Shown in pieces: positions 14,373-64,000 of a stretch of 64,000 nucleotides of DNA; the first letter of the stretch is position 1, and every line of letters starts with the position of its first letter. A model generated the notes under the pieces. The model worked only from the letters and a program-made list of their open reading frames with translations, ran no database searches and was not told the DNA's origin. This DNA comes from Podarcis filfolensis (taxonomy: Eukaryota): assembly GCA_964270895.1 (NCBI GenBank), contig OZ185444.1, one strand, 5' to 3'. The position numbers and the translations under genes are program-made.

Positions 14373-14567
14373 ATGGCTTTCTCCAGTTCTGACATGGATG
14401 AGGCTTTTGACTACTTGTTCAAGATCATTCTGATTGGAGACTCTAACGTGGGGAAGACGTGTGTGGTCCATCGCTTCAAGTCTGGGCAATACTACGCAAA
14501 GCAGCAGAACACTATTGGAGTGGACTTCACGGTACGTTCGCTGGAGATTGACGGCAAGAAAGTGAAG
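14373..14567 (+). CDS. RAB19: RAB19 coding exon 1
   Basis: Acceptor TAG at 14341-14343; ATG 14373; ...DGKKVK|GTTAGT, phase 0. Confidence 0.95.
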
Positions 14568-35600: not shown

Positions 35601-38600
35601 AGAAAAACAATTTAACTAAAAACACTACTACTGTAACGCTAGAATGAAAGCTTCAAGTACAAGAGTGAGTTCTTTGTCAGAAGAAGTCTAGCCTGAAGCA
35701 AAAAATAAAATAAAATAAAAATGATACAAATCATTAAAGGAAAGGAAAATAATGTTCTCCTAATGAAAATCATGCTATCGGCACCCAATGACCTCAAAAG
35801 CTTTATCCCTCTAAAAATAGAAGAAAAACAGAAGATTTGCTCATTTCAGCCAGTAAGCGTTTCATGAATTAAAGCCTTTCTGTCATCATACGATCTTAAG
35901 AGCAGAGTCTGACATGCTGAATATTCCTCAGACATATTCTAGTAATTTTAGAATCAAAGTAAATTAGTCTTTAAAAATACAAACATTTCTTCAAATACAC
36001 CCAATGCCCCAATGTTACAATTCCTAGACCTTTACCCCTGTTGCACCACCTGGTTTTATTTTACACTATTAATCTGGCTCTCAATAGAGCATGAGGAATG
36101 CTGCTATGTGATAAACTTGAAAAATGAACTTGACGTCTCCTATGTGCCCTAGACTGGGTTTAGATATCGGTTCAACTGAATTGGAAGCATCAGTCAGCTT
36201 GGCCAGCCTTAGACTATAATGGTTACATAGACTTTCTACTCAGAGAAGACAGACTGAAATTAATGTACTCACTTACAGTAGATCCATTAATGGACATGAC
36301 TGAGTACGCCTAATACTAGATACAACCCCTAAGCCTTCCAAGTTTGAACTACATCACCATTAATGGTGCCAAAAGCAGCAGGGGTGCCCCACAAATACCT
36401 ACTATGATAGTGGAAAATCAATAAATCCATTTAAAAAATAGCATTTGCCAACCCAGTGCCCTCCAGATGTTTAAAAGACAACTCCCATCGGCATAGGACT
36501 GATAGGATCTGTCAGCCAAAACATCTGGAGGGCACAAGGTCAGCAAATGCCAATCTAGCAGCATATGACCTACACCTTTCTTTTTGTGTGGAAAAGAGCT
36601 GTTCACACACAGAGAGAAAAAGAACCAGACCACTTTAGTCCAGGGGTGAATGTATCTCACATGTACTCAAGACAAAATATTTTTCTGTAGGAATCTCTTT
36701 TGCAAGCTCATCCTTACACATGCCCAAACTGCTACTTTCAAATTTGGAAATGAAGTCCTAAATTTAGTAAGCTTCTAACACAAGAGTTCATGTGTGTGTG
36801 TGTGCGCACGCGCGCGCACACACACACACACACGTGCGACAGAACTGCCACCACCACCCCACTAGAATACAGATGCAAGTTCAGTTTATGTAGAGAAAGG
36901 GGGGGGGGGGAGAGCAGAACACACAATATACTGCTCCTGGACCTGACCATGAAATGCAGTTCAGTGTAACAAGTGCATAGCAATAGATAAAGGGCAAAAA
37001 ATATATATCTTAATTTAATGTGAAAGCTCATGTGGTCTGATCTAGTGGAGTGTCTGACAAAGAATGAGAGCTTGGGGTGAAGATGCTGACCCACTGCGTG
37101 GGAGTTGTGAATAAGGAAATTCCATGCTTGGGTTCATTAAAACTGCTGATATCATAATACCATTGTACAAATTTATGGTGCAACCACATTTGGAATACAT
37201 ACTGTGTACAATTCTGGCCACCTCATCTCACAAAAACATATTGTTAAGTTGGAAAGGTTCAAAAAGCTCAAGCAAAATAAATGATCAAGGGGATGGAGCA
37301 ACTTCCCAATGGAGACAGGCTGCAGTATTTGGGGCTTTGAAGTTTAGAGAAAATGTGAATAAGAGACAATATAGAATCACAAATGCCACATAGAAAGTGG
37401 ATAGAGAAAAGGTTTTCTCCTTCTCCCATAAAACTAGAACTCAGGGACATCCCATGAAGCAGAATGCTGCAAGATTCAGGACAGATGAAAGAAAGTTCTT
37501 CTTCACTCAGTACATAGTTAACAACTGAATTCACTTCCACAGACACAGTAATTGCCACCATTCGGGATGCCTTTAAAAGACAATTAGACCAATGCATGGA
37601 AGATAAGGCTATCAATGGCTAATGGTCACAATGGCTATGCTCTAACTCCACAGTTGCAAGCTGTATGCTTCTGAACACCAATTTCTGGAAACTGCATCAA
37701 GGGAGCATGCTCTTGTTCTTGGGTCCGGGTGGGATTCCCACGGGCACCTGACTGGCCACCAAAAGAACAGGATGCTGAACTAGATGGGTCATTGGCCTGA
37801 TCCAACAGGCACTTCTTATGGTCTTAAAAGAGCCATGGAAGCACATTGTATGGTACTGCAAGGAGGGTTAATCACTTATAACTGTTTGTAAATTGGACAG
37901 CATCTCATTTCCCAAATATAAAAAGGCATCATTCATTTCACAATGGAGCTGGAGCCGTAGTTGTCATTCTTTTATAGAGCACCTGGATCCATCTCACATT
38001 CTAGAAGGTAAATTGAAGCCCTAAACCCATACAAACAGCCAGATGCCTTACTTAAGAGTACATTTTGGCATCAGTAAGAAACGTGTCAGTGCTTGAAGTA
38101 GCAGGTGTGAGAAACACCAATACAGTGTGCAACTCAATATTAAAATACCTCTACAGCTTTTTCTAAATTTAGGTACTTCAATACCACCTTCATACTGGAG
38201 TACCCTGGTATCCTATTAAGCACAGTACATACAACTCCCCACTTGAGTGCAGCACTAGGAACCCAGTGGGTAGCTCACAAGGACATCCTCTTCGGGCTGC
38301 GGGAAGGGTCTCCTTGCGAGCTGCAGGCTGCTCAGCTGACATGCGGGAAAGCAGCAGTGGTAGCGGCTGCTGCTGCTGCGCTACCCTGCATGTCAGTTGT
38401 TCGGCAGGGAGACTGAACAGCCTCAACAATGCCCTGTTGTACCTCTGGCTTGCAAGTAGACCCTCCCTGAAGAATGTCCTCTTCAGGCTCTGAGGAGGGT
38501 CTCCTTACAAGCCACAAGGACTCTCCAGGGTGCTCCTCACTTATGTGCATTTCTCTTATGCATACAGGGGCCCAGAATGCAACCCCCGTGTAAGTGGGGA

Positions 38601-41600
38601 GTTGCCTGTACTGCAATTTGGCACCAATTTATATCAGGGATAAACAACACAAAGACCGACCACCTAGGTCAACAATATCACTATCAAATTCATTATTGAA
38701 TCTTTTGAAACTGTGTCGTCTATGCAATACCATATAATCTGCACGATTTTCACTTCAACACCCCCACACAAAATTTGATCATGTATTCAGAGAAGATGCT
38801 TTCAGCCAGCTGGGTAAATCCAATTCAATTTAGTAATAACCTGGAATGAACCCATAATATAGCCAAGCCTGAAGTTTTTAGCAATTTCATAGTTTGGAAC
38901 ATCCTCGGCCTAAGGCTGTATACCCTAATTAACCTGTCTCTCATCCTCTCTGTATTTGCTTAACCCATTCTGTTCATTATGTGAAATCGTTTTTCCAAAG
39001 TAAATAAATAGTACACATTCTGCCTGACATTCTCTTTTTAAAATTGGCAGGTTTGAAGAGTTTACGAGTGATATCAAGTGGATTCTACAGTACCCACACC
39101 CTTTAATTAGCTGTTGCTATTTTAGATAACATGACTGTCACTCAACTGTTCACTCTTCAGAATTAAGAAAAGCACAAATGACTGAGAATATCTTTGCTGT
39201 GAGGCCCCAGAAGAGGAAAGACTGCATTGTTACCTACTCTAAAGAACTGTGCCCCATTTGCTCTGCAACAAACAACACTATGGGCTTTTGTTCAAGGATC
39301 ATATGTGAAACCTTATGTGAAACCTCATGACTTTTCTGCTACATTCTGTTGCAGATTCACACTCCAACTCAGATGGCATCATTCAAGTTCAACAAACTAC
39401 TAGCAAGCACCTGAGGACAACTTGTGAGGAATCAACACAATAGGGAGAATAAGCTTCAGAGGTTAGAAGATTATTGCTACCTGGTGGGCACACCATGGCT
39501 TCGTTCTTATGTGATCCAGCAGTATGGAGGGGAGATAATTAATCTATCATGCCAGTCAAGGGTTACTCATAACAGGGGAAACTATAATGTTCCTTCAGAA
39601 TGAACTGGGCAGGCATAAACCTGGAGGTGCCCATTTCCAGAAAACTTTATTAGCATCTGTCTGTCTCAAGAGACAAAGGAGTGCGCCTCCAGGGGTGAAG
39701 TCAAACCGCTGAATTAGCAGCACCGAAGTGACCTCCCTGGGGCGCAAGCCTGGGCAGTGAGTATGGAGGTCCTGTGCTACCCAGATGACTAGACCTCACC
39801 GTGGCTGATATGGTCCAAAGGAAAGCAGAGCAAAATGTTCCACACCAGCCTGGCTGCAGGAGTTGCCAGAGGGAGGTGTACAAGATGCTATCCAACAGTC
39901 ATAGGATTTGTATAGGGTTTACTCCTCAGTCTCCCACAGATATCCCAAAAGGCAGTGGAGGTTTAGAATCAGAGTTTCCCTAGATGGACTACGTTCCCAG
40001 GCTGACAACTCCATCTCCCTCTCACTTTCCTCTACAGCACATGCAGAAACCACCTTCTTGACCATTGGACCCACTATTGGTCTTGTCCACTCAAACTGCC
40101 AGAGGTTGTCTTTGCATGCAGGGAAAGTCCCTAAATCACAACCGAGGGTGAGGACAAACATGCCACTGAAGGAGCTTAGTATCACCTCTTTTATTAGATT
40201 CAATTATTTTGCTAGTTTGCTGTGGTGCTTGCTATTTTCCAAAATAGTCAACTTTTATTTCTCAGCTTGACATTTTAAAAATGTAGTTTACATAAAAGCT
40301 GGAATGAGAAAATTCCTAATGCTTTGCCTGGCTGCCCAAGCTCCTATAAGTTAGTGTATGTTCCTATGAATTGGAAATGGCTTTCTAGCTGCACATAGCA
40401 CTGAAAAAACCAGATATTACTCTTCTGTGCATGTCCCACACCTCAAACTAAGAAGGATACATGTGAAGCATCTGTTGTCTCTTACATTCCAAAGAACAAT
40501 ATGAAACCTTGATAAGCATTGAAAGTTTTGTTGTGACACAGTACTGCGCAAATCATCACTGATTATACAGACTTTTTACTTGGCGTAGGTACATGGTATG
40601 CACAAATTGCATGAAAATGCATAAATAGAAGAGAGGGCTATGAAGTTTTCTGAACTACATATTTCAGCAGCAGGATGATCTTTTATTTCTATGCATCACT
40701 GGTGAAAGGTGTTTGGAACAGGTGCAAGATCAATTAAAGCCTTGCATCTTCTGTGACAGTCTGCATACAATCATAATACTGTTTACTATTTTTTCAAATT
40801 AAGGAGACACTGTTGTGTTCATTCCATATCATCATCTTACATGGATGCTAATTTCCAGATGGCCTTCCTATCATAATTATTTTATTTTAAATATGTATAT
40901 ACCACCCATGCAACAAAGTCCTCTGGATGGACAAAAGCACACTGATTGTTGTTATTCGCTAGTTGTGGACGTAAACCACCAGAGTAGCAGTTCAAAAGCA
41001 TAATTATATTAACGGATAGACTGACATCCTCTAACTTACATAAATATGTAGCAAGAACGTATACAGTAGTACCTCGGGTTAAGTATTTAATTGGTTCTGG
41101 AGGTCCGTTCTTAATCTGAAACTGTTTTTAACCTGAAGCACCACTTTAGCTAATGGGGCCTCCTGCTGCTGCCGCGCTGCTGCTGCACGATTTCTGTTCT
41201 CATCCTGAAGCAAAGTTCTTAACCCGAGGTACTACTTCTGGGTTAGCGGAGTCTGTAACCTGAAGCGTCTGTAACCCGAGGTACCACTGTATTAACTAGA
41301 AATTGTTTCCTATCCACTTTTCTACCCTGCTCTCCAAAGTTCTGCACTTCCCAGGCAATCTCTTGTCTCTGTTCCCTTATGTTCTCAGAAGCTACAGGTT
41401 ACATCTCTCAAACTGCCCTAGATTTCCTGCAACAAGAAAATAATCGTAAAAACTACCAATAAGCTCTGATATAGAGAGGAAAACAATAACTGGGTAATTC
41501 TTAGGTTTGACTGAGAACAATCTGACCGATAGGTAGGCAAGAAGAAAGTCCAAGTTACATTGGTCCAAGAATGATCTAAAGGACTGCAAATGAAAGGACC

Positions 41601-44293
41601 CAGGGAAATAAAGCCATTTTCAAATAATGAGGACTCAATCTTGTTCCCTTATATAGGGAACAAAAGATGAGAACTCATACTTCACTGACTGGAAGATGGT
41701 GCAGTGGGTACTAAATACACCCACTTTGGGAGATGCCAACTACATTCATGCCTCCTGCGCACCAGTGGGCATTTTCTTAGATAACTTGAGGACAACTGTG
41801 AATCTCAGGAACTTGCACTGCATGAAAATAATTTAAGATATAGGTATGGTGTTATGATACATCTCCAACGACAAAAGATTACCGTATGATTCAAACTGCA
41901 AATAATTAAGGGAAACACGACAGGCTCAGTATCTGTTGTTTTTCTTTGTACTCAAAGCTATGATCGGTTTTTTTTATCTAGCCCTTGAAAACTTGGAAGC
42001 CATCAGTGCTGTCCTGTCACACATTTCACTACACCATACACAATGCTTGTTACCCAAAGATGTCAATGTGTTTTACAAGCTCCATGTACCTCTTAGGATT
42101 AAAAGGGGGGGGTGTCTTTGTTTATACAGATGGATTAATGGTATCTGTCCACATCTCCCCACTGCTTTCCCCCTCTATTTTTGATTGTATAATCCTTGGG
42201 AAACAAAGACCTATTTCAATTGCCTACACACCTCTATAAAGGTGCAATGTGCAGCAACACACACACAATCAATCAATCAGGTGTGTCCAAGATTACACAG
42301 ATACCTCTTTGGATAACCAAAACCTAAACGCTAGACTTAATTCAAGGACTGAAAGTACTAAAGCTATTTCTACTGTCCCACACATTTATTTCTAAGCATG
42401 CCACTTAAATGATTATAACTACAGCTATCACTATTATAACTACAGTACTCTTCCATTTGCAAAAGAGAACAGACCAGGATAGAGTAGTTTCAAGGTAAAG
42501 GAAGAGCTGGAACTCTGAAAGCACTCAACATTACCTTGTAACAGAACTGAGAATAATGCTAAAATTCAAGTTCTACAAATTTACAGAAGCCACTCAAGTT
42601 CAAAACTCACAAAAATTCATTGTTTTGAGAATTATTTATGTTAGGACCTGTAAAGTGACCAGAAACAAAACGAAGACCTCTGGACAAGAACTATGGCACT
42701 TCTATGTGTTCACTACAGCATCTGGCACAGAACACAGCATTAAGAATTAAAACAGTGATCACATTTACTTGATCTGATTAGAGATGGTCAACTTGAATCG
42801 CTCCCAAATGGGATGGGAAATTTTTATCCAGCTTCACTCATGAGAAAACTGTTTCCAAAACACATGAACAAGAAAAATATCCTGTACTAATAAAACACAT
42901 GGGGTTTGTATGCAATGCCCCATGTTTGCCCAAACGCGTGTGCTTCCTACTTATTTACAATGCCCTATATTTATTCTAAAACTTGCTATCCCAACAAGGT
43001 GCCTACACAAATTGTGGGGCTACAATTAGCATCATCCCTGACCATTAATTATGCTGGCTTGGGCTGAAGGGAGTTGCAATCAAACAACCTCTGAAATGTC
43101 CAATGTTGGGGAAGGCTGTTCTAATGTCTCAGCAGCTGTAAAAGGGGCTCAGGGCCTATGCAACGAAATACACTTCCATCCCAGACCACTGCTGAAGAAT
43201 TAAGTAAACTAATCTAGCAAAGAATTACAGTAGATCAAACCAGAAGACATGCAGTGTAGCCCTAATTAAGTTTACTTCAAAGCAACTCCCTAGTAAAGGA
43301 CTGCAATCTAAGTTTGTTTCAGCCTAGGACTTCAAACACTGCTGCCAGAGAATCCTTTTCATTTTGCTCCCACATACACATCTTATGTTCTCAGTCTGCA
43401 GTTAAGCAGGACTCGGAAGGCTTACGTGTACATACAGATCAGTGCCACCTTTAGTCACAGGCGAGCATCACCAAGGGGAACAAGCAAGTGAAGTGAACCC
43501 GGTGAGCAGAAAGGGTTGCGTTGGGTGTTAATTGGGAAGCACACGGAGGAATACATTGCTGTCACCATACTGGGTGGGTGGGGGCGAGAGAGAAAGAGAT
43601 CTGCGTCTAGGAAAATGAAAACTAATAGTACTTAGGATGGATGTGGAGCGAGTAGTAAACAAAGGATCCAGGCAGCATTTTACAAAGGGCGCATGGAGGA
43701 CTAGCGGCGGAGGAGCCGGAAAAACCCCCAAAACCAAAACATCTCGGAGGACACGTGACAAGAAACCCTACCCGGCTTCTAAAAAAAGAAGATAAGAGAC
43801 CGACGGGGGCAGTGGGCAACAATGGTGACATACCGACACACACACACAAACCACCACCACCCCGACCCCTGTTTCTGCTTCGGAAGAAGGAAGGATCCTG
43901 GCCAGGATCGGGGGGCGCTTGTTCTGCCAGTGGAGGATAAAGGACCCGAGGGAGGCAGGGGGGCTCGAAGGTCCGAGGAGCACGAGCGGGGCTCCGAGGG
44001 CGGTTAGGGACGGGAGGGAGGGGGGAGGCACGGGCGCCATCACCCGCCAGCGCCTCTGCACGTTACCTGCAGGCGACTTGCTTAGTCCAACCGCCGCTGC
44101 TTCCCCCTCCGGCTCCGGCCGGCGGCGGCTGAGGCTCGGCTGTGGGGAGGCTGGGGGCCGTGGCGGTGGCGGCGGAGATGGTGGCGGCGGCGGCGGCGGA
44201 GGGGCTGGGGGCCGCGACAGCCGCTGCTCCAGCTGCCGCGGCTGTCGCTGCCGCTGCTCCGCCACCACCGGGGGCCACCGCAGCCTCCGCCAT
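22536..44293 (-). CDS. MKRN1: Makorin-1 RING/C3H zinc-finger E3 ubiquitin ligase
   Basis: Exons 44067-44293, 32902-33030, 30158-30384, 27511-27737, 26282-26496, [exon 6 not visible], 24820-24958 and 22536-22748. C3H fingers, PAM2-like [14 protein letters not shown], Makorin Cys-His motif, RING start CGICMEVV...CNHTYCLKC, acidic C-terminus. Confidence 0.95.
23347..23482. mobile_element. hAT (Charlie-like) MITE, 136 bp, palindromic
   Basis: TIR cagtgtttcccaacct/aggttgggaaacactg; perfect 8-bp TSD agttagac. Confidence 0.9.
23562..23609. repeat. (AAT)n microsatellite
   Basis: About 16 AAT units seen directly. Confidence 0.95.
24281..24650 (-). mobile_element. L2-clade LINE 3' fragment
   Basis: [23 protein letters not shown] peptide; (TTA)n tail near 24281-24295. 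Confidence 0.8.
24820..24958 (-). CDS. MKRN1: MKRN1 exon 7 (C3H finger 4)
   Basis: CCAG|[30 protein letters not shown]...SSRYR|GTAAGT, 139 bp. Confidence 0.95.
25433..25571. other. Assembly gap (139 N) at the expected position of MKRN1 exon 6
   Basis: Run of N seen directly between MKRN1 exons 5 and 7. Confidence 0.98.
26282..26496 (-). CDS. MKRN1: MKRN1 exon 5 (RING N-terminal part)
   Basis: [31 protein letters not shown]...[21 protein letters not shown]|GTGAGG, 215 bp. Confidence 0.95.
26650..26895 (+). mobile_element. CR1 LINE 3' fragment
   Basis: agattcaggatagacaaa..tacttcttc..cagttaaactctggaa..ggacaaattcatgga, similar to 37440-37620. Confidence 0.65.
27511..27737 (-). CDS. MKRN1: MKRN1 exon 4 (C3H finger 3, Cys-His motif)
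   Basis: [36 protein letters not shown]...HIK|GTAAGG. Confidence 0.95.
27933..28163. mobile_element. Degenerate Tigger-like MITE
   Basis: Right end ccaaggtaccactata; decayed left end agtacacctctgttttc. Confidence 0.5.
30158..30384 (-). CDS. MKRN1: MKRN1 exon 3 (PAM2-like motif)
   Basis: [11 protein letters not shown]...[19 protein letters not shown]|GTAAGT. Confidence 0.95.
31904..32301. mobile_element. Tc2-type (MER104/Kanga-like TIR) non-autonomous DNA transposon
   Basis: TIR ccgtatttttttgctctataagacgcac / gtgcgtcttacagagcgaaaaatacgg; TA TSD. Confidence 0.85.
32902..33030 (-). CDS. MKRN1: MKRN1 exon 2 (C3H fingers 1-2)
   Basis: [19 protein letters not shown]...[16 protein letters not shown], 129 bp, GT-AG. 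Confidence 0.95.
33540..33935 (+). mobile_element. CR1 LINE 3' fragment (degenerate)
   Basis: gagattagacaaattaatgga...ggtctgacctggcagggctcatcttatattctta. Confidence 0.6.
34300..34500 (+). mobile_element. Old L2 reverse-transcriptase remnant
   Basis: [12 protein letters not shown]...[22 protein letters not shown]. Confidence 0.65.
36789..36838. repeat. (TG)n-(CG)n-(CA)n alternating purine-pyrimidine tract
   Basis: 50 bp of unbroken Y/R alternation. Confidence 0.9.
37050..37830 (+). mobile_element. CR1 LINE 3' fragment
   Basis: [15 protein letters not shown] peptide; CR1-type 3' UTR ending ggcctgatccaacagg..cttcttatggtctta. Confidence 0.75.
41064..41289. mobile_element. Tigger/pogo-like Tc1-mariner MITE
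   Basis: TIR cagtagtacctcgggtta/taacccgaggtaccactg; TA TSD. Confidence 0.88.
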
Positions 44294-49593: not shown

Positions 49594-49678
49594 ATGATTT
49601 TGAAACCTGCCTTTACCTCGGGAGGCCGTGTGGCTTCTGTGGCTTGTCGTGTTCTCCAAATAAGAAGATACTTGAACA
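49594..49678 (+). CDS. PsuG-PsuK gene, putative first coding exon (targeting peptide)
   Basis: Acceptor TTTCAG ending at 49538; ATG with A at -3; [29 protein letters not shown]|GTGAGT, phase 1, matching the next exon. Confidence 0.7.
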
Positions 49679-52600
49679 GTGAGTGTTTCTTGAAGAGATT
49701 GCACTCTCTTTTTTATGCCACCCTTGTGTGCGGTATTAAGGCTGGTTCATGCATACATGTACATCACCTGATAGCTCATTATCAGTCAGGGTTCCTTCAG
49801 ACTGCCATTATTTTGCAGGGCGGATTCAAGTGCACACCGGAGCATTTAATTTGTGCATTAGTAGTGGATTGGTGCTCTCTGTCACCCTAGCTCAGAGGCA
49901 GTGTTAGGGTAGCGCGACTAGTTTGGCCGCATGGAGCACCGCACTGCAGGGGGCGCCACAACAGTGCTGCAGAACGGAGCACGAGAAGGGGAAGCACACA
50001 CCAAATTTTAGTGTTGCACAGGGTGCTACTTGAATTTGAGAGTCCAAAGTCTGCCACTGTCCTAATGCAACAAATCTGCTTTCAAAACAAAACAAACCCA
50101 GGCTTTATGTAGTTCAGAATACACATCATGAGCAGTTGTACAGTTAAGTATTTTTAAATCTACTGCACTGGAGGGGGTTTGGATGAGGCCACAGTGTCCC
50201 TCTGTCCCCCTCTGTTTGGCTGTGCTGGGCTCTGCCAGTGGAGTAGCTCTGCTGCCTCAGAAGCCCCAACTGCACCTGCACAAAACTGTTAGAATTCCTG
50301 ATCTATGATTGCAGTCATAGGATTGTTGTCTTTCACATGACGGTATATGTTTTGACTCCACAGAGTGGGAAGTGATGGAGACAGGATGTTTGTGTTACTG
50401 TGTTCCGTGAAGTGGGACTATTGTCCTTTGTTCTTTTTCTCTTGGCTGTCTGATGCTAGAGAGAGAGGGAGCCATGTTGCAGTGCTCTGTGTGTGTTTAT
50501 ATGTAAATAAAGTAGATTAGCCAAAATGCTGAGTTGCTGAGGTCTGTTATGCAAAGCTGAGAAGACTCTGCAGATCCCTAATTGTGCTGATGTCTGTTGG
50601 CATCGGTCGCTGTGATGTTTGGGCTGAAGAAAGCTTATGAAGCTCCCGAACGATCGACCAGGAGGGAGGGAACATGCCAGTCGGGTGTGTGTCTCTGCCA
50701 GGGTCCTACTCCAGTGTAGGCTGAACTCCTGACAAAAACAACACATTGACAGCAGCTGCCACTGAGGTTTTCCACAGGAGGTAGCTGGTGCATGTGTCCC
50801 CCCCCATGGGGCATTTCAGGAGTGGGTGGAGGGCAGGGGGTGGATCTCAGCTAGCCAAGAATCCACTGGATCCCAAGCTATTGGCAAGTTGTAGCAATGG
50901 CCCCAATCTAGAGTTTTCTGCTATGGCAGCCTTGCGCAGGTGTAGTAAAAATACAAAATTTTCCACTCCTCCCCCACCTTGCCTTCTGTTTTGGATGGCG
51001 CAAGCGGTGGGGGCTACAGATGTGGCAGTGGTTCCCACATTCCATTAAGCCCAGCTGCTGTTCACCAGAGTTTGGACTGAACCCTTAATGGCCTTACAGG
51101 GGCTCCCTTTTTAAATGATCATGTGTGTCACTTCACTTACATTTCAAAATGCAAGCAAAGCCCTGCTGTGTTTGGAGCCCTTCTCCTCTTTGAGGCCCTG
51201 GACTCCTGCCCCAAAGTCCTGCCCTGATTGTCACACTTTCCCATTAGATATCGACAGTGTTTATATTTTGTTCTAGGCAGCGACTTCTGCATCCATCCTT
51301 TGGTGAGGGAGGCCCTGGACAGCAGGAGGCCTGTCGTTGCCTTGGAGAGCACCATCATTACACACGGCATGCCATATCCCCAGAATCTGAGGTAGGCAGA
51401 GACTGTAATTTTCTTGCACAGTGAAAGCTGCAAGCTGGACTAGGCCAGAGACTGATGCACACATTCACACACCTCTCCTGACATCTCATTGCTTGTTGAT
51501 CTGCAGCTAAACTGAACTCATGAACTGCCTTCATTGAAAAGGACTATTTCTGGGGTAACCAGGTCAGGGGCATTGCTAGGTATTTAAAGGACTTGGAGCA
51601 GAGGCTCCTGACACAAATCTACATAGAATTTGCATGTGCTAATTTATGTAGACAGCCCTGGGAAGTTGAGGGGGTGGCTGAGTGGCAGGGGTCTTCACCA
51701 GTAATGCATTTTGCATTGTACCCAGCCACTGGGTGAGTGGCTTTTGGGGAAAATTTTAAGAAAATGGAAGTGGCAGAAAATATGGGACCCACCACAAGAG
51801 CCTTCCCCGCCGGGCCACACCATAACAATGCTGAGGTCATCAGGAAAAATGACAGCTCTGTCAATTACATTTGACCTTCAATGGCTGCTTCACAAGTTCT
51901 AGCTATTGCCTGAAGTTGCAGTCACCAAGTAATAAACATATGCTTGAAGGTAGGATCCACTTAAGCCTGTTTCATATTCCTATAACCATACATTTTTGAT
52001 GGTAGTGAAGCTTGATAAGCCTATCTGGGGCAGTCTTTGCACAGCAAATGAACAGATGGCACAGTCTCTTTAGGATTAAGGTACCACTGCAGATTGCAAG
52101 TGCGGGAATTGCATTCTTGAACACTCCTCTGGGTGGAAAAAATTCATTGACATTAGAAAAGCAGCGCATCAGGGAATGTGTAGAATCTGAGGAAGGATAC
52201 ACCAAATGATTTATCTTTATGTAGATTGCCATTCAGAATAGATAAAACCAGGACATTTTTTTTCAGCCGGAGCTCACCAGAACTCAGTCCTGGCACCTCT
52301 CAGGTGGGCTCCATTGCCATCATAAGAGAACAGGGGAGGGGGTCATGGTGAGTTCCAGCACCTCTTTTTCTAGAAAAATAGCACTGGTCAATAACCTTGA
52401 CATACTAGAGAATAGGTTTTATGTTGGCTAAAGGCAGGGCTATTAGGACAGTGGGGATCCCAGATTGCTACCTACATTTTTGAGCAGGGATTGGGGAACC
52501 TATGGCACTCTAGATGTTGTTGGACTCCCATCAGCCTCTGTCAGCATTGCAGAATGGTCAGAGGTGATGGAAACTGTACTCCCAACAACACCTGAAAGGC

Positions 52601-53771
52601 CAAGGGGTTCCCCATATCTGATTTTTCCCTGTGCTGGCAATCTGGCCGTAAATTGATAGCGCAAGAACCTCGTTGCCATTAAAAACTAACCCAAGATTTG
52701 TTAGGCATCAGATTATGTAGCCACAGGGGAAGGAAATGAAATGTAAATAAGGGTGTGGTGAGGGATTGGGTGATGGAGTACAGCTTTTAATACCATGGCA
52801 ACTTATTTTGCCTTCTTTTTCTTTTGCGTTGCTCGCAATGCACCAGCATGGCCAGAGAGGTAGAAGAAATAATAAGAGCAAATGGGTCTGTGCCAGCAAC
52901 TATCGGCATTTTAAGCGGTCGCATCCACGTGGGCCTCCAGAATGAACAGCTTGAGTCCTTGGCCAAGAGCAAAAACGCAATAAAGGTGTCTCGGAGAGAT
53001 CTTCCCTACATTCTCAGTCAGGTATTGGACTAAACTCTCGGGGTGGTGGTGGTTTGATTTCTTTTATGTTCCCATGGTTCAAATCTCTATAGAGCACACA
53101 TAATCTCTGAACATAACATAAGAACATGAGAAGAGCCTGCTGGATCAGTAGGACTGGAACCACTTCAAAGCAGTGCCACCTACCCACAGCTCAGACAGCC
53201 ACTCCAGAAAGATATGGTGCTTGATAGTATTGAAAGCTGCTGAGAGGTTGAGGAGAATTAACAGACATATTTCCCCTGAATCTCTCCCAGCAGAGGTCAT
53301 GCAGGGTGACCAAAGCAGTTACTTGCAGGCCAAATGGGGTGACCTAGTAAGCTTAATTAGGTCCAGGTTCCCCACCTCTGTAGTTTACAGTTCTTATGAC
53401 CAGTAGCCATGGATAGCCTTGTCTCCATTAATTTGCCTAGTCTCCTTTTTGAGCCACCCAGGTTGGCTTACATTGCTGTATTTTGCCCAGTGGTGGAACG
53501 ATGTGAGAGGGTTGGAATCTAAGCACTCCTTGCTGAGGGTCTTGTGCAATCTAGATTATGACTGGCTGTTCCACACAGGGCTTGTCTGGTGGTACAACTG
53601 TGGCTGGAACCATGATTGTGGCACACAAAGCAAAGATCCCTGTATTTGTGACGGGAGGAATTGGAGGGGTTCACCGCGGAGGAGAGAAGAGTAAGAGAAT
53701 TAATTTTATAACTAGAAATTAAATTCCAAATGCTGTTTTAATTTTGTAACCAGAGGTTAAATGCTAAATGC

Positions 53772-53810
<39 letters not shown>

Positions 53811-56800
53811 ATTCTAGGCTTATAACCACCTATCATTTTATGGATCTCCTCTAGGAATGGAAAACTTGGGGCCTTTCAGATACTTTTGCATGCTAATTCC
53901 CATAAGCTCAGCCTACAAGGATCATGGGAGTTATAGTCCATCAGCATCTGCAGGGCACCACATGGGCTACATCTGAGTTAATGGCATTTCTCCACATTCT
54001 TCCCTCCCTACCCTGCTTCCTCTCTGTTCTAGAGGTGAGAACCAGGACACCCTCCCCAATTCATATACAGCACAGTCTCAAAACTGATCCACCCCACACA
54101 CCTTGCAGTTGCTACTTAGAAACACATTGAGTTAAACGCATTCACTCGTTTAGCGCTACAATCCTATACACACTTGCCATGGGGTACACTCAGTGGTTTT
54201 TTTTTTTCTTAAAAAATGTTTAGGGGTACTCTCATTTTGACTCAAGAAAGTCACCATTTTATAGTTCAGACTGGGAAAAATAAATACAGTAAATGGACAA
54301 AAGTACAAAGATTCACAAAACGTTTAATGGTGTGTGCACCCCTGCGTCCCCCCAGAAAAAAGCAGTGGGTGCACTTCACTGAAACCAACACGACTTATTT
54401 TGGAGTAGCCATGTATAGGATTAATCCAGGGCCAGCCAGCTCATGAGGTGGGCTGAGGCAGCCGCCTCAGGCAGCAGAAGCCCATGAGGCAGTGCCTCTG
54501 CAGGCATGCTGCCCACCCCACCCCACCACCTCTGCCACCGATGGAGAAGCAGCAGTGCCGAGATCTCACCGAAATCCCACAACATCTCTTGAATTCTCAT
54601 TTGGTCCATGGGATCTCGCCACTGCCATTTTGTGGATGCTGCCAAACAACCCGGGTAAGGGAGGCTTCCGCAGGGACGGTGGCAGCGAAAGGTCAGGGTG
54701 GCACTTTCCTGTTTCACCTCTGGTGGCAACATGGAATGCACCACTCTTGGATTCTTCTGCTGAAGTTGCATCTTGTTTGACCCTCAGACCGTAGAAAGCC
54801 ACAGCCATTTAGAGTGGATGGTACTGGCAAGATGAGCCAACGGTCTGACTCATTATAAGGCAACTTCATATGTTACTTTAATACAGAATTATGATGGTTC
54901 CCACCCTACCAGTTTGCCCATTTGGTGGCTATGAGATTTGGCAGGGCAACTGTCTTTTCAGTCTTTTCTCCCTGTCCTTTTCAGCTTTGGATGTGAGTGC
55001 AGACCTGACAGAATTAGGCCGTACTCCGGTTGCCGTGATTTCCGCAGGTGTGAAGTCTATACTGGATATTGGCAGGACATTGGAATATCTGGTAAGGAGC
55101 CACAAATGCAGTGCAGAGGGAAGGAACAAGAGACAGAAGGCTGGTTAATCTGGCCTTTCTCAGTACTGTCGTTCCAGCTTCAAGTAGAATTTACTCCCAT
55201 ATTTCAATGGATAGTTGTACTGTCATGGTTGTCCTGCTCAGAACTCTGATAGGGATAGTGGGATAGTAGGGATAGTGGAGAATTTGATAAAGTTCACACT
55301 GAAAGGCAAGTCTCCATAATTTATACTTTCCAAAGCGATATGCAAACCAAAACACAGCCAGCTTTCAGAATTTTCACTTCTCTGAATTTTGCAATGCGGT
55401 TCTCTGGCCAAGTATTGTGTACAAAAAAAAGCATATGCTGGGGCAAAGTATGCATATGCTAGTGAAAATAACTTACAAAAGTGTTAGGGAACATTGCTTT
55501 GCAAAAAATTCTATATTAGGCAAAATTGCATGTGAATGTAATGTGCACTAAAATGCTTAGTAACTTTCATGAGAACTTTAAAAAGTCCAAACTTATGTGG
55601 AAATGTGGAAAACTGAACTTAACATTGGGAAAAGGAGAAACTGAAACTGACAAATATGCCTATTCCTCTTTTGAGCGTAGTGGAGGTGAAGGAGGCAAAT
55701 TATCTGTTTTTACGAATGTTTCTGTGCAACCAAATTATTAATCAAATTGATTTGAAACTGGCTTAAGTTTCTAACACAGAAACATTCCTACCTAATTTAT
55801 TTTAAAAGTAGTTGGGTGGCTTGTGCACCCACAGTGGGCTACAAGGAATACATAGGCAGCCCACATGCATTATAGAGATTATAGCAATTAAAATGTATAT
55901 ACTTTGAGGTTGTAGACACAGTTCAAAGACAAAACAAGAAAGAGATTTGTTGGGCTTGCTGCATCTAGTTCATGAGATCGGATTCTATCAAGTCCATGGA
56001 GCTGGAGGAAAGGGCATGTATTTTATCCTTTTGTGTGAGAGTAGTAAGGGTTTCCTGTTTGGGGAGGGGCTGTACCTCAGTGATACAGCTTGTGTCGTGG
56101 GTGCAAAAGTCCCTAAGTCCTGACATCTCCAGGCAGCAGGGCCCTCAGCTAGTCAATCTAAGAAAGATACCTGCACATTGCAGCAGACAGTGAAGAGCTA
56201 GCTGGACCAATGGTCTGACCTGGGATCATGGAAATTCCCTTTGATTCTGTAGTGTGGCAAGTGATTTGGTCCATAACCCAGAAAGATGGCTTTTGCTTTC
56301 ATATCATGTATAGTATTTTCACTTTGCCCCTGCTCTTCACCTCTGCAGGAGACTCAAGGTGTCTGTGTGGCCACCTTTGGAGACTCCAGAGAGTTCCCAG
56401 CCTTCTTCTGCCATCAAAGCGGCTTCCAGGCCCCATATCATGTGCAGAACGAGGAGGATGCTGCACAGCTGATTGGTGAGCTGTCCGTGGAACAAAGCGC
56501 TTTTTGAGAATGGAGGGTTTGAGTTTCAACCAATGAGCTTCTCAGTTTCCCTGAGGTGGCAGTTCATTGCCCACGTAGTGGGGAACAAAGCCCATTGTAG
56601 TCCGTTGGGTTTACTTTTGAAGAAATGCGCATGGGATCAGGACAAATCTGTCCCACGTGCTCCTTTCCATCCTTGGATATCTTCTCTTGTTTTCAGTATC
56701 CTGTTCTTAACAGCAGGGCTGGTGTTGAGGCTTGGCAGGGGCAAGCTTTCACACCCCAGGTGACAAGAGCCCCCGAACCCAGGGCTTTTTTTCTGCTGAA

Positions 56801-59800
56801 AGAAGCTCAGCAACTTAGGGTTGTCTGTCCAAAAATGGTGGGGGTTCCTGCACCTCTTCTTCCAGAAAAAAAAGCACTGCCTGGACCTACTGAAGTTAAT
56901 GGTGGGTGGCCACCTTGTTTCAACCTGCTCTTTAGAGTGAATATTCCTGTTTCACTGTCTTGGCTCTGCGCGTGGATTGGAATGTAACGTAAGCGAAATA
57001 ATTATTATTTATAATTATTTCTCTTTTAAACATTCTGTTGTGACTTGGAGCTGCTAAGTAGCAGGATGCTACGCTGGTAAAATCTCTTTCAGAATGGTCC
57101 AGGAAGTGACTGAATGTCATAACGTGCCACCCGTTTCCAGGGAAATTGTACAGAAAAAAAGGGTGGCTGCCCCCACGTATCTATGCACTCACTGGGGCTG
57201 ATGGGAGTTGTAGTCCAAAACGTCTGGACGGCAGCAAGTTAGTGACGGCTGCATTAAACTTCGTTGGGTGCAAAGCAGTTGACACCAGAGGCTACTGGGA
57301 CGAAGAAACAAATTGCAAGCACATGCATATACATCTATAAGCGATGAAATTTGTGATGCCACCTTTGCCACCTGTTTCAGCAGAGAAACACAGTTAATGA
57401 CCTTTCTTCCTCAGCCAGGTCCCTGAATTTGCAGCTGGGCAGTGGAGTGCTGATTGCAGTGCCCTGCCCTGAGGATCAAGCTGCTTCAGGACAGCTTATT
57501 GAAGAAGCAATCCAGCAGGCTTTGAGAGAGGCTCGGTAAGCTGCTGCTGCTGAAATCCCGTAGCTTTTCATAACACAAATGTTCTGGGTTTGTTTGGTTT
57601 GTCTTCCATAGCCCTGCCAGAGCACCAGCCAAAGGGGGGGGGGGAGGCAGTTGTCCACAGATCCCTGCAGCCTCTGACACCCAAGTTCCAGCCAGTGGGT
57701 GCCCTCTAGGGGCAGGTTTTCTCCAATCAAGTCCCTCCACTTAAAAGCCTGAGCTGAGCTCACCTTGGATAATCAATGCATATATTTATTAAGTTTGTAG
57801 CATAGATAGGGCTACCTGATGCATTTCCCCCTTTGTATGGATAGAAAGATGATTTATTTGTGCTCTTCTCATATACAAATATAAAATGACTGGTTCTCAT
57901 CCAGATTGCTCTTCTTACATTTGCAGGGAAAAAGGGATTACAGGAAAGGAGCTTACACCTTTCTTGCTGCAGAAGCTAAACAAGTTATCTAGTGGGGAGT
58001 CACTTAGATCCAGTATCCTTTCCTGAAAATGCTCGCTTCTTACTTCCCCTCCTCAAAATCCAATTGCATAATTTTTTCCCATGTTCTCCATACTTTCTGG
58101 GAATCTTACACTGCCCCAGCGCAACATTACATTGACAGCATTCTGAGAAATTAAAATAGAGGGGGATCTTTGCACCAGTTTTTTACACCTACTTTTCTTT
58201 TAGCTCTTGGGTTCTTCTGCTTTTATTTTCCTTTCATCATACCCTTCCCCATTATCAGATATTGCCTTGATCAAGAACAACGCCAAGGTGGGCAGCCGCA
58301 TAGCTGTGGCCCTGAACAAGATCCAAAGAGCCCAGGGCTGGGGAGACGACTTGGCTCAAAATGAAAATGTATCTCCTGTACCAAGACCGGTGAGTGGCCT
58401 GCTCCGTAAGGGTCGCCACTCTCTCAGAGAGAAACAGCTTGGCTGCTGCAGCTCATTTGCACATTGCCTTAACCTTGTGGTCTTGGCCTCGGGTTCCTCC
58501 AGGCAATGTGATGATTGAGCATTTATCCAGATTTCTTTGCACAAAGCTTACCTGGTGGTTAGACTATGTTAAATGAGGGTCTTTAGGTCAGCCACCACTT
58601 TTGCCTTCTCTAAGACTAGCAGTGCTTCCCTGCAAAATATTTTTTCTCAAATGGAGATAATCTCAGTGTAGGTAAAACAACACAAAAAGTCACAAATGTG
58701 GAGCTGAAATGAAGAGATCTTAAAAGTCATCTAGTCAAACTCCTCACTGATGCCAGTTTATAATGTATGTACACCAATCGTGCATGAAAACAGAATGTCT
58801 CTTTTGTCACAATGATGCTTGCTTGGAAATGCAAATGTTGCAGTCATCGAACAAGAAGAGCAAGGAGGCATGCCTCAAGGAAGTGCTTTTAAAAGCAGTA
58901 ACTTATTTTGGTAGGAATGACTAATGCATTTTCAACCACAGTCCATCCACAGGGGCACTAACACAAACTATTTTTTGAATGCTCAATCAACACATCCTTT
59001 TTAAAATGGATACTCAAACATAACCTCCAGCAAACATGTTGAGTTGTTTATCAGCTGTCTAATGTTGCATGAATGTTGGACAGTGACTATCTTGAGAGTT
59101 TTTAAAAATGCAATTTGACAATAATTTTGTACTTTCTCTCTGGAGGTTGTTTATTTACAAGTTGCATTAGGGCTTTGCATTTATTTACTTTTTTCAATAT
59201 GTACTTTGTTTTACTGCTCCTAAGGAAAACCTTTTGGTTGAAAAGCACTGACCATTCTTCTGTGGACAAAGTTGATTTATTTGCTCCCACTGCCTTTCAG
59301 GGAACCATCTCTTTTTTTTTTTTTTATAATATATTTATTGAAGTTTTCAAATAAAGCATATATTAGATAAGCACAACTTATCATTGTCCATTTAACATCT
59401 CTCAATTGTTACATGGGACTCCCCCACACCTCCCGCATACACTTACATCATTATTAAATTAATTTCAAACAAATTATCATTTAACTCATCTTAATTAATA
59501 ATCTTAATTTGGTTTGACATATAATTCAGCCTTAAATCTAATTTAATGGTAGACAATTGTCTGCACTGGCATCCAATTCAACACTCAGCCAAATTACAAT
59601 ATTTTTGTAAATAAATCTTAAATTTCCTCCAGTCTTCTTCCATCCTTTCTTCTCCCTGGTCTCGAATTCTGCCGGTCATCTCGGCTAATTGCATATAGTC
59701 CATCAGTTGCATCTGCCATTCTTCCACAGTGGGTAGCTCCTGAGTTTTCCAATTCTTGGCAATTAATATTCTTGCTGCTGTTGTTGCGTACAAAAAGAAT

Positions 59801-62800
59801 GTTCTGTCCTTTTTTAACACGCTCTGGCCGACAATACCCAGGAGAAAGGCCTCTGGTTTCTTAGTAAAGGTGTATTTAAACACCTTTTTTAATTCATTAT
59901 ATATCTTCTCCCAAAAGGCCTTCACTCTAGGGCAGGTCCACCAGAGGTGAAAAAAAGTTCCTTCATTTTCCTTACATTTCCAACATTTGCTATCAGACGA
60001 ATGGTATATTTTAGCCAGTTTAACAGGGGTCATGTACCATCTATACATCATTTTCATCACATTTTCCTTCAACGCATTACATGCAGTGAAGTTCAGCCCA
60101 GAGGTCCACAACCTTTCCCAATCTTCAAACATAATATTATACCCAATATCCTGCGCCCATTTTATCATTGTTGATTTTACCATTTCGTCATGTGTGTTCC
60201 ATTTCAGCAGCAAGTTATACATTCTTGAAAGTACCTTAGTCTTAGGTTCTAACAGTTCAGTTTCTAACTTTGACTTTTCCACTTGGAATCCTAACTTTTT
60301 GTCATTTTTAAACACTTCTTTAATCTGAGCATAGTGTAACCAGTCTCGCACTTTGTCTCTCATCTTTTCTAAACTCTGCAATTTCCAGTTGTCACCATCC
60401 TTTTCTATTATCTCCCAATATTTTGGCCAGTTGGCCTCCATATTGGCTCTTTTCCGAGCCTTAGCCTCCAGGGGTGACAGCCACCTCGGAGTTTTATTCT
60501 CCAATAAGTCTTTATATTTTGTCCAGACATTAAAAACTGATTTTCTGACAATATGGTTCTTGAAGGCCTTATTTATCTTAGCTTTATCATACCATAAATA
60601 TGCATGCCATCCAAACGCATTATTAACAGGGGGAACCATCTCAAGGTGGCCTATGGAAGACTTTGAAAAGGCAATGTAATGTGAGGCACATATAGATAAC
60701 AAGGTCCCCCATGTTATGGACTACAACTCCCACCAACCTTTACCATTGGTCATGTTGGCTGAGGCTGATGAAAGTTGTAGTCCACAATATATACAACAGA
60801 TGCCACCACATTGCCTGTCCTTGCTGTGAATTTACTACTTTCAAGCATTGCTTGAAACATGCCTCCTCCTTCTCTTGTCTGATAACTGCACACCAAGCTT
60901 TCATTAATATGAGGGGGCGTATCTAGATCAGCTTCTGCGCAACTTCTGATCCACTAAGCCAAGTGTTGATCATTATTAGCCCACCAAGGACTCAATAACC
61001 CTCCTTTGTTTCTACTGCCTCGGTGGCACTGCAAAAACTGTGGTTGTCTTCTGCTTTGAGCAGGGCTGGGGAGACTGTGGCCCTCCAGATGGTGCTACAC
61101 CCCAGCACCCCTAAGGACCAATCCCCATGGCCAAAGGTCAGAGTTGATGGAAGCTGGTGTTCAACGATGTCTGGACAGTTGCAGGTTCCTCAGCCTTGGC
61201 TTTGTGGGCATGTCTTGGAAGAAGGGCTCTGGAAGAAAGCTCTGCTGATGGCTTTCTTCCTCTCACCCACCCACCCACCTCTTGTTTTCCTTTCAGGTGG
61301 TCATTGGTGGCATCAACGTTGATTTCATAGCCAAGGCAAGAGATGCAACAATAGTGGTAATTGCACCTAGCAATATTTAAGCTGCATTTTCCTTACCCTA
61401 ACCTGTTGCTGTAAAGCTCATCGGATGCAAGGAGCTCACATGTCATCTTTCCAGACTATTAGGAAGTATAAGGGCTGGCAGTCTGGAGGCAGGCAGGTAC
61501 TACCCAGGCAGGTAACCAAGCCTAAAAGGTGTTAGGCAAGCAAACATGTGTATAGGTGGTTAGAAATGGGCTGATCTGGGCAGATAGAAATGGGCCATCT
61601 GAGGATTTATACCAGGCATAGGCAAACTCAGCCCTCCAGATGTTTTGAGACTACAATTCCCATCATCCCTGACCACTGGTCCCGTTAGCTAGGGATGATG
61701 GGAGTTGTAGTCCCAAAACATCTGGAGGGCCGAGTTTGCCTATGCCTGATTTATACAGATGTTGATGATGTTGATGTGAAGGTTGAATTTGTGTCATCAG
61801 AGAAATGAAGGCGGGGGAAAGCAGTCTTCAGGGTGCAATAGAAAAGCCCTAGCTCACTACTTTTTCCAGGTATGTCTGTCTGCCCCACGAGAGCAGCTCA
61901 ATAATTCATTTATTTAACAAGATTTATAACCCACCTAATCAACAAAAACCTCTAAGTGGTTTACATAAAACAATATGAAATATCCATAAGAAGCATACCA
62001 TTAAAATATAGCTTTAGAAAAGTAGATCTAAGATTTATTGAAATATACCGTATTTTTTGCTCTATAGGACGCACCGTCCCATAAGGCGCACCTAGTTTTT
62101 TGGGGGGGAAATAAAGGGGGGGAAATTATTTCCCCCCCCCAGGGGGAAGCTTCCCCCAACCCCAGCCCCCAAACAGGCAGCTCTCTGCAAGCCGTGGGAG
62201 CCCAGCGCCTGGCTCCCGCTGCTTGCGGAGAGGTCCGCGAAGCCTGGACGCTCTGAGCTCAGGGCGCGCAGGCTTCAGCATTCAGGCAACTCTCTGCAAG
62301 CCGCGGGAGCCCAGCGCCTGGCTCCCGCAGCTTGCGGAGAGGTCTGCGAAGCCTGGACGCGCTGAGCTCAGGGCGCGCAGGCTTCAGCATGCAGGCAACT
62401 CTCCGCAAGCCACGGGAGCTCAGCGCCGGGCTCCCGCGGCTTGCGGAGAGGTCCGCGAAGCCTGGAGAGCGAGAGGGGTCAGTGCGCACCGACCCCTCTC
62501 GCTCTCCGGGCTTCAGCGAAAGCCTGCATTCACCCCATAGGACGCACACACATTTCCCCTTCATTTTTGGAGGGGGAAAAGTGCGTCCTATAGGGCGAAA
62601 AATACGGTAAGTAAAACCAGCAGTTTTGGAACACATGCCTAATAAGTTGGTGTTTGGGAATATGTACTTGAGTGAAACGTTGCTTAGACTAGCCTTCACC
62701 AATCTGGTGCCCTCCAGATGTTTTGGACTACATGGCCATGTTGGTGAGGACTGATGGGAATTGTAGTCCAAAACATCTGGAGGACACCAGATTGGTGAAG

Positions 62801-64000
62801 GCTGGATTAGACTGAGAAACTGGTTCAGAAACAAAAGGTTTACAGGATCAGGCAAAAGCCTATTGGTCCCTTTTTCCCACCTGATTTGTGCTAAGCTGCA
62901 ATACCACCCTTTGGCCACATGTAGCAGTGTCACTGTAATGCAGTAGTTTGGCAATTTACCACAGTGGTGCAGAGAGTAAGCTACTTGTTTCCTGCTGCCA
63001 GAGATGCCAGCGCCCTACAGGAGAAAAGAAGGGAGCATTCTTCCATAGGCAGGTAGCAGCAGCAGCAGCTTAACACTGCCTTATGGTGCCTAGGTGTGGT
63101 ACAACTTGCCTCCCAGCCACTTCTTATGGGTCACAGGTGTTGCTATGATAAAAATGATGGTTTTCATTATTGTACACATGGACCCATGAGCTAAGAGAAA
63201 TAAAAACGTTCCATAATAAGTGATGAAAACTCTGCGGAGTGCGGAAAAAGAAGAGGGTTTAAAGCCCTATGTCATCTAGTGGAACATTTGATGCCAAGTG
63301 ATGCGACACACCTCTTTGGTAAAAGTGAGCAGAGTTCCCTAGCCAAATGTCTGGCCACTTTTCTGATTAGCTGACAAGTGGATGAAGACAGAAATGGAAG
63401 AGTGTGATGGTTGTTTAATTAACAATTAACTAAAAAAACACTTCTTAATCCTTGGAGACAGAGAAGAAAAAAGTACAAACCATGATGAATGTTGGCCTAG
63501 TAGACGACTGGATTTTATAGATTTTCCATTTTTAGAAGAAATATGGGAACCTCAGCAGATGACAGAAATAAGTTTATTGTAAGGGATGGCTGTAGCCTAG
63601 CTCATTTTGGATGGGGAAGGACCATAGGTGATTGTCAGAGCACCTGCCTTGCATGCAGAAGTTTTGAGGCTCAATCCCTAGTGTCTTCTTATGGGGTGGA
63701 AAAAGCTCCTTTCCGAAATCCTTAAGAGCTGCTGCCAGTCCGAGTAGACAATGCTAACTAGATGGATCAATAGTCTAAACTTGGCAGCTTCCTGTGTTCC
63801 AGTCCCATGAGATCACATAAAGTAGAATAGTCTCCAGAGAACTTGGGTTTAACTGGAGCCAGTGTTGACAGCAGTAGCTTTACGGTACCAGCTGGGAAAA
63901 TCAAGGCATATCTAATTTTTGCCCTGTTCTGTTGATTTCTCTGCATTTGCAGGGCGGAGGACAGACAAATCCATCAATAGTGAGACAGTCGTTTGGTGGT
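49594..64000 (+). CDS. Bifunctional pseudouridine-5'-phosphate glycosidase (PsuG/YeiN/IndA) + PfkB-family pseudouridine kinase (PsuK/YeiC); S. pombe C1861.05-like; 3' end beyond the window
   Basis: Eleven phase-compatible exons: 49594-49678, 51277-51391, 52847-53021, 53579-53690, 54985-55091, 56349-56475, 57415-57535, 57927-58012, 58259-58389, 61297-61356, 63953-64000. PsuG motifs [70 protein letters not shown], followed by the PfkB start [10 protein letters not shown]...TNP...RQSFGG. Confidence 0.92.
51277..51391 (+). CDS. PsuG-PsuK exon 2
   Basis: TTCTAG|..[39 protein letters not shown]|GTAGGC. Not in the ORF track. Confidence 0.92.
52847..53021 (+). CDS. PsuG-PsuK exon 3
   Basis: [30 protein letters not shown]...[13 protein letters not shown]|GTATTG. 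Confidence 0.93.
53105..53560 (-). mobile_element. CR1 LINE 3' fragment
   Basis: acataagaacatgagaagagcctgctggatcag is the reverse complement of the CR1 tail. Confidence 0.55.
53579..53690 (+). CDS. PsuG-PsuK exon 4
   Basis: [38 protein letters not shown]|GTAAGA. Confidence 0.93.
53771..53809. repeat. Compound (TG)n(AG)n microsatellite
   Basis: Seen directly. Confidence 0.9.
54985..55091 (+). CDS. PsuG-PsuK exon 5
   Basis: [35 protein letters not shown]|GTAAGG. Confidence 0.95.
56349..56475 (+). CDS. PsuG-PsuK exon 6
   Basis: [43 protein letters not shown]|GTGAGC. Confidence 0.93.
57415..57535 (+). CDS. PsuG-PsuK exon 7
   Basis: [41 protein letters not shown]|GTAAGC. Confidence 0.92.
57927..58012 (+). 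CDS. PsuG-PsuK exon 8
   Basis: [29 protein letters not shown]|GTATCCTTT. Confidence 0.92.
58259..58389 (+). CDS. PsuG-PsuK exon 9 (end of glycosidase domain and linker)
   Basis: ATCAG|[20 protein letters not shown]...SPVPRP|GTGAGT. Confidence 0.92.
59312..60630 (-). mobile_element. 5'-truncated L1-clade LINE (ORF2 C-terminus, 3' UTR, polyA) with 12-bp TSD
   Basis: Uninterrupted ORF with the Cys-rich knuckle CWKC...TFFHLWWTC and KPEAFLLG; T14 at 59312-59325; GGGAACCATCTC at 59300-59311 and 60631-60642. Confidence 0.9.
61297..61356 (+). CDS. PsuG-PsuK exon 10 (start of PfkB kinase domain)
   Basis: TTTCAG|[20 protein letters not shown]|GTAATT. Confidence 0.9.
61613..61748. mobile_element. hAT (Charlie-like) MITE, 136 bp, palindromic
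   Basis: TIR caggcataggcaaact/agtttgcctatgcctg; perfect 8-bp TSD atttatac. Confidence 0.9.
62048..62607. mobile_element. Tc2-type non-autonomous DNA transposon with an internal 109-bp tandem repeat
   Basis: TIR ccgtattttttgctctataggacgcac / gtgcgtcctatagggcgaaaaatacgg; TA TSD; repeat units start at 62175, 62284 and 62393. Confidence 0.85.
62690..62804. mobile_element. hAT MITE, 115 bp
   Basis: TIR agccttcaccaatctggtg/caccagattggtgaaggct; TSD gcttagac/gattagac (7 of 8). Confidence 0.8.
63953..64000 (+). CDS. PsuG-PsuK exon 11 (partial, cut by window end)
   Basis: TTGCAG|[16 protein letters not shown], leading into PfkB signature 1 (GG..N). Confidence 0.85.

Follow-up and report, generated by a model that had tools for sequence, protein, structure and literature searches.

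A bifunctional protein of pseudouridine catabolism, with a glycosylase at the N-terminus and a kinase at the C-terminus, has been described in fish, birds, invertebrates and most fungi (PMC12212127). Mammals are reported to be without these enzymes “except for platypus” (PMC9247573, citing Chen & Witte 2020), and the fused enzymes have been noted to be without experimental definition (PMC9247573). Among the closest described systems are the stand-alone glycosidases PsuG of Escherichia coli (YeiN; 4GIJ/4GIM) and PUMY of Arabidopsis (8K05–8K07), for which residue roles have been assigned (PMC10761123), together with the kinases PsuK (YeiC) and PUKI of the same two organisms. Here we analyze a stretch of 64,000 nucleotides from the lizard Podarcis filfolensis (assembly GCA_964270895.1, contig OZ185444.1), referred to as the window. 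Its plus strand carries a multi-exon gene at 49594–64000, which we hold with a probability of about 90% to be the 5’ 55% of the lacertid orthologue of the vertebrate bifunctional pseudouridine-catabolism gene. This gene is also known as C1861.05 in Schizosaccharomyces pombe and zgc:136858 in zebrafish, and as “PsuKG” in some papers. A previous reading of the window made without database searches (the sequence-only reading) had described it as an intact lizard PsuG-PsuK fusion gene.

Gene structure

Exons were discovered by a stop-to-stop reading of the three plus-strand frames together with the list of open reading frames, which gave short open segments with PsuG-like peptides. Exon borders were set by direct reading of the junctions and by tblastn with full-length fused homologues, which had been found from exon 3. 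The model rebuilt independently in this way comprises eleven exons, 1167 nt and 389 codons with zero stops, exactly the count given by the sequence-only reading. All ten introns are bounded by GT...AG and their acceptors are pyrimidine-rich. The exons, with E-values for the Pfam family PF04227 where a match was obtained, are as follows:

49594..49678, plus strand: exon 1; start codon, 28 codons and 1 nt; basic N-terminal extension with no acidic residue; donor GTGAGT
51277..51391, plus strand: exon 2; begin of the PsuG domain, LESTI with Glu52; E 1.4e-11
52847..53021, plus strand: exon 3; PsuG, KVSRRD with Lys113; E 2e-20
53579..53690, plus strand: exon 4; PsuG, Thr150 and His157; E 3.9e-15
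54985..55091, plus strand: exon 5; PsuG, DVSAD (Asp165, Ser167, Asp169; metal/phosphate site) and GVKSILD (Lys186); E 1.8e-15
56349..56475, plus strand: exon 6; PsuG, tblastn matches to shark and invertebrate fusion proteins; E 2.3e-10
57415..57535, plus strand: exon 7; PsuG; E 1.7e-6
57927..58012, plus strand: exon 8; PsuG, Thr291 and Leu295; E 4.5e-6
58259..58389, plus strand: exon 9; end of PsuG (Asn310) and variable linker to the kinase, by tblastn and alignment; donor GTGAGT
61297..61356, plus strand: exon 10; first PfkB kinase exon, 20 residues aligning to the PfkB start of full-length orthologues
63953..64000, plus strand: exon 11, ending at the window end; 16 residues with the kinase substrate loop and GG motif; acceptor ...TTTGCAG

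For exon 7 there are two candidate acceptors, and only the one before 57415 preserves the frame and agrees with the spacing in homologues. Exon 9 joins exon 10 in frame and free of stops, so that an N-terminal PsuG domain is followed by a C-terminal kinase; every listed orthologue has this domain order. The turtle and ostrich loci carry these eleven exons too, in identical order. The window covers 389 of about 705 codons. Since it ends within exon 11, whose sequence runs on as VGRNLADC in congeners, some 316 codons are out of view, among them those of the catalytic GAGD motif.

A different product would result if the exons were a chance or mis-spliced reading, for example with regard to the first exon or the frame. 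An independent annotation of P. lilfordi (745 amino acids) indeed begins at an upstream ATG corresponding to window positions 48372–48500, and its 43 residues are 95% conserved in the window. On the other hand, every RefSeq isoform known from P. muralis or P. raffonei begins with MILKPAFT... and matches residues 1–389 of the model without a gap. Furthermore, Met1 of the model aligns to Met1 of the 702–705 amino acid proteins of birds and lacertids and also of alligator and gar. We therefore consider a different product highly improbable and retain the eleven-exon model. The gene range annotated for P. raffonei starts at approximately window position 48460, and together with the P. lilfordi annotation this points to a 5’ exon that would lie about 1.1 kb ahead of the main ATG.

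The glycosidase domain and its active site

The peptides of exons 2–8 match PF04227 (Indigoidine_A/PsuG) as seven pieces in the correct order, at positions 2–30, 27–90, 87–128, 128–163, 164–205, 198–244 and 244–274 of 291. E-values range from 2e-20 to 4.5e-6 and each piece exceeds the curated gathering cut-off of 25.2 bits. The membership in this family assumed in the sequence-only reading is thereby borne out over positions 2–274. Aligned to E. coli PsuG, the spliced peptide shows 51% identity over 308 columns (E 3e-98). When exon 3, the largest exon, was compared with solved structures, it matched the E. coli glycosidase 4GIJ/4GIM (E 7e-12) and the Arabidopsis structures 8K05–8K07.

Active-site positions were mapped on an alignment of the E. 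coli K-12 psuG product, the lizard model and seven vertebrate orthologues. All 11 active-site or ligand residues are kept in the lizard protein as well as in the seven other orthologues. With E. coli counterparts in brackets and roles according to PMC10761123, these are:

Glu52 (Glu31): proton donor
Lys113 (Lys93): phosphate binding
Thr150 (Thr130): hydrogen bond to uracil N1
His157 (His137): aligned residue
Asp165, Ser167, Asp169 (Asp145, Ser147, Asp149): metal binding (Asp145) and phosphate binding (Ser147)
Lys186 (Lys166): Schiff-base lysine, covalent adduct
Thr291, Leu295, Asn310 (Thr270, Leu274, Asn289): uracil binding (Leu274); the Thr270 mutant is inactive

The four motifs singled out in the sequence-only reading (LESTI, KVSRRD, DVSAD and GVKSILD) are thus all present and aligned to E. 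coli catalytic residues. The lizard domain differs from E. coli PsuG and Arabidopsis PUMY, both of which stand alone, by a basic N-terminal extension of about 30 residues, a linker of about 25 residues and the fusion to a kinase.

Not all members of PF04227 are pseudouridine-5’-phosphate glycosidases. The family also takes in enzymes of the IndA/AlnA type, and AlnA (PDB 4EX8) was found as a weaker structure match with E 3e-7. The PsuG-like domain could therefore use another C-glycoside or work in the synthetic direction, as do the bacterial natural-product enzymes IndA, AlnA and SdmA. However, the top solved matches are the pseudouridine-5’-phosphate glycosidases of E. coli and Arabidopsis, the identity to E. 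coli PsuG is high, every residue binding pseudouridine 5’-phosphate (PsuMP) is retained, and the fusion partner of the domain is a PsuK/PUKI-type kinase. Another substrate or direction is thus highly improbable, and the prediction of a pseudouridine-5’-phosphate glycosidase for the first half of the protein is almost certainly right.

Orthology and selection

The model is 99.2% identical to the P. raffonei protein XP_053261895.1 (705 amino acids), ungapped from Met1. Identity amounts to 97.7–98.2% for P. muralis, 97.9% for P. lilfordi and 95–96% for Lacerta and Zootoca. At the DNA level the locus including introns is about 96% identical to P. raffonei. The 702 amino acid proteins of birds align from residue 1 to residue 1 with about 73% identity, and turtle proteins show 75%. 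The annotated genes of P. raffonei (LOC128422208, isoform X1) and P. muralis (LOC114605551, XP_028602773) share with the window the ungapped residues 1–389, the start codon, the exon layout and the neighboring gene MKRN1. P. raffonei differs by the three substitutions S303R, N344S and N346K, none of which is located at a catalytic position.

In a maximum-likelihood tree, which mirrors the species tree of vertebrates, the window sequence falls within Squamata with 100/100 support. Together with the near-identity to P. raffonei this supports the description of the locus as a lizard PsuG-PsuK fusion gene. In order to quantify selection we calculated the ratio of nonsynonymous to synonymous substitutions (dN/dS) codon by codon over 351–361 codons, with dS near saturation. 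Values of 0.13–0.15 against turtle and 0.11–0.12 against ostrich were obtained, which is purifying selection and the mark of a functional gene.

A protein search with the shark orthologue yielded hundreds of annotated vertebrate entries, all with PF04227 and PF00294 and named [quoted passage not shown] or “zgc:136858”. Birds and fish fill the 120 matches listed for this query; squamates came from queries with the N-terminal half of the turtle protein and with the echidna protein. The squamate entries comprise Podarcis, Lacerta, Zootoca, Anolis, Pogona, Varanus, Elgaria, Rhineura, snakes and geckos, and tuatara, echidna and platypus were also found. Annotated holders of the gene thus include many squamates, turtles, crocodilians, birds and monotremes. 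The novelty implied in the sequence-only reading is not borne out: annotations of the gene exist for many sauropsids and for monotremes, and its distribution has been published (PMC12212127, PMC9247573).

The kinase part

Within the window the kinase is represented by residues 354–389 encoded by exons 10 and 11, and this segment aligns to the PfkB start of all full-length orthologues. In common with E. coli PsuK and Arabidopsis PUKI it has the N-terminal VVIGG-N-V-D strand, the GG dipeptide and a TNP loop at the position of Ser30-Asn-Pro in E. coli PsuK.

Some observations weigh against a bifunctional enzyme in P. filfolensis. The catalytic part of its kinase lies beyond the window and only 36 kinase residues are visible. 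Compared with E. coli PsuK this short fragment reaches 25% identity with E 0.59, which is not significant, and exon 10 alone, which is too short, gave no Pfam match. In addition, our literature searches found no paper in which a vertebrate fusion enzyme was assayed, in agreement with the sequence-only reading, which knew of no biochemical characterization of an amniote version.

Full-length orthologues allow the missing part to be assessed. The full-length ostrich protein aligns to residues 8–302 of E. coli PsuK with E 1.6e-25. In the P. raffonei protein PF04227 is located at 38–327 (E 2e-133; 444 bits, positions 2–291) and PF00294 at 354–676 (E 4e-32), with NVSGAGD at residue 634. The full gene, which extends over 25.4 kb in P. 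raffonei, is therefore intact in a congener. By homology, the kinase function predicted for the second half is right.

The kinase half could nevertheless be disrupted beyond the window in P. filfolensis, in which case the product would be a glycosidase only or the gene a young pseudogene. This would be compatible with the end of the window at codon 389, which places about 45% of the coding sequence out of view, and with the shorter isoforms annotated in related species. Against such a break speak the visible half, which is free of defects and strongly constrained (dN/dS near 0.12), the congeners, which at 96% DNA identity have a full 705 amino acid product with an intact PfkB domain, and the retention of the fusion throughout sauropsids. 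We consider a downstream break very unlikely. The claim of an intact gene accordingly holds for 389 of about 705 codons, whereas the catalytic region of the kinase was seen in congeners only. Integrity of the kinase half in P. filfolensis, like expression and enzyme activity, is what we infer for the bifunctional orthologue.

A mechanism can be drawn from the homologous enzymes PsuK/PsuG of E. coli and PUKI/PUMY of Arabidopsis. Free pseudouridine from RNA turnover would be converted by the C-terminal PfkB kinase to pseudouridine 5’-phosphate. The N-terminal PsuG domain would then open the ribose ring, with Glu52 as putative proton donor, and form a covalent adduct via Lys186. With a divalent metal presumably held by Asp165, the C-C glycosidic bond would be cleaved to yield uracil and ribose 5-phosphate.

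Gene neighborhood and loss in therian mammals

Two neighboring genes were located in the window:

24730..44293, minus strand: MKRN1; ATG at 44293, head-to-head with the pseudouridine gene and 5.3 kb from its ATG; Pfam MKRN1_C, zf-CCCH and RING on minus-strand exons
14289..14684, plus strand: N-terminal exon of a Rab GTPase (Ras family, E 5e-13)

MKRN1 exon 1 in the window matches exon 1 of ostrich MKRN1 (tblastx, E 1.8e-24). This match of the ostrich upstream flank was obtained with the low-complexity filter off; with the filter on, tblastx of the flank gave nothing. We take the exon at 14289–14684 to be RAB19-like, which would fit a RAB19-MKRN1 neighborhood. The only run of Ns in the window (25433–25571, 139 bases) is located in the MKRN1 span between the coding exons 24730–24990 and 26278–26529.

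MKRN1 is also the head-to-head neighbor in P. raffonei, an agamid lizard, ostrich, gar and platypus. Downstream, P. raffonei, the frog Spea and platypus have a DENN-domain gene in opposite orientation, so that the order in P. raffonei and platypus is MKRN1, pseudouridine gene, DENN-domain gene. By its size and position only, we assign the last of these to DENND2A. In Spea a 626 amino acid ADCK2-like ABC1 gene is present on the other side. In P. raffonei a small gene call of 209 amino acids with no Pfam family separates the pseudouridine gene from the DENN-domain gene (locus sequence 37350–39999), and a similar call of 182 amino acids is seen in the agamid locus sequence (48922–53400).

The human gene order is SLC37A3-RAB19-MKRN1-DENND2A-ADCK2, and the sequence-only reading had mapped the mammalian loss of the gene between MKRN1 and DENND2A. 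This location is borne out by platypus, which retains the gene between MKRN1 and the DENN-domain gene. A loss across mammals as a whole has to be corrected: because platypus (708 amino acids) and echidna (663 amino acids) keep the fused gene, the loss is therian and not pan-mammalian. With the echidna protein as query, no marsupial or eutherian was found among the 120 matches listed, in keeping with the published distribution, and after monotremes the best matches were turtles at 69%. The monotreme orthologues share the domain order with the lizard protein, and the locus order; they differ from it in sequence (about 66% identity). The terminal branch of echidna (0.58) is the longest of the tree (median 0.16), which could mean that constraint has been relaxed or has changed in monotremes, or could be an artefact due to the choice of isoform.

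The N-terminal exon

The position of the short basic first exon is conserved in vertebrates ranging from sharks to lizards and platypus, as is that of the start codon. The N-terminus is basic throughout the vertebrates examined, with 3–9 Lys/Arg and hardly any acidic residue among residues 1–30. Peroxisomal targeting signals of both types were considered and rejected. For type 2, no R-[LVIQ]-x5-[HQ]-[LAF] nonapeptide was seen by eye in the N-termini of lizard, bird, turtle, shark and lungfish; for type 1, the sauropsid C-termini read ...KMD, ...KMN or ...KLT. Helical amphipathicity of the N-terminus was not above shuffled controls, so that a mitochondrial reading rests on composition only. Tentatively, the exon might encode a mitochondrial presequence, a possibility that we rate as rather doubtful. 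Pseudouridine catabolism of vertebrates would then be mitochondrial and not peroxisomal as in Arabidopsis, and the therian loss at the MKRN1-DENND2A interval would have taken away an organellar salvage route.

Sequence elements in introns 9 and 10

Intron 9 contains a block of about 1.3 kb (59312–60630) with an uninterrupted open reading frame of 374 codons on the minus strand (59578–60702), for which no Pfam match was found. The block is missing from the orthologous site in P. raffonei, where the flanks overlap by about 12 bp; this overlap could be a target-site duplication. The block is a lineage-specific insertion and presumably a retroelement fragment. In intron 10 a GC-rich tandem repeat with a 109-bp unit is located at 62174–62466 (2.7 copies, 93% match), and related open frames extend over approximately 62100–62600 on both strands.

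Biological significance

There is nothing unusual about the gene described here: it is orthologous to a known enzyme, has been annotated before, and belongs to a family whose phylogenetic distribution is known. The modest addition of our analysis is a check in a squamate, in which the active site is fully conserved and the gene is under purifying selection. In addition, the platypus gene between MKRN1 and the DENN-domain gene is direct evidence that localizes the therian loss to this interval. The vertebrate fusion enzyme is of some relevance for the question of how animals handle pseudouridine and N1-methylpseudouridine.

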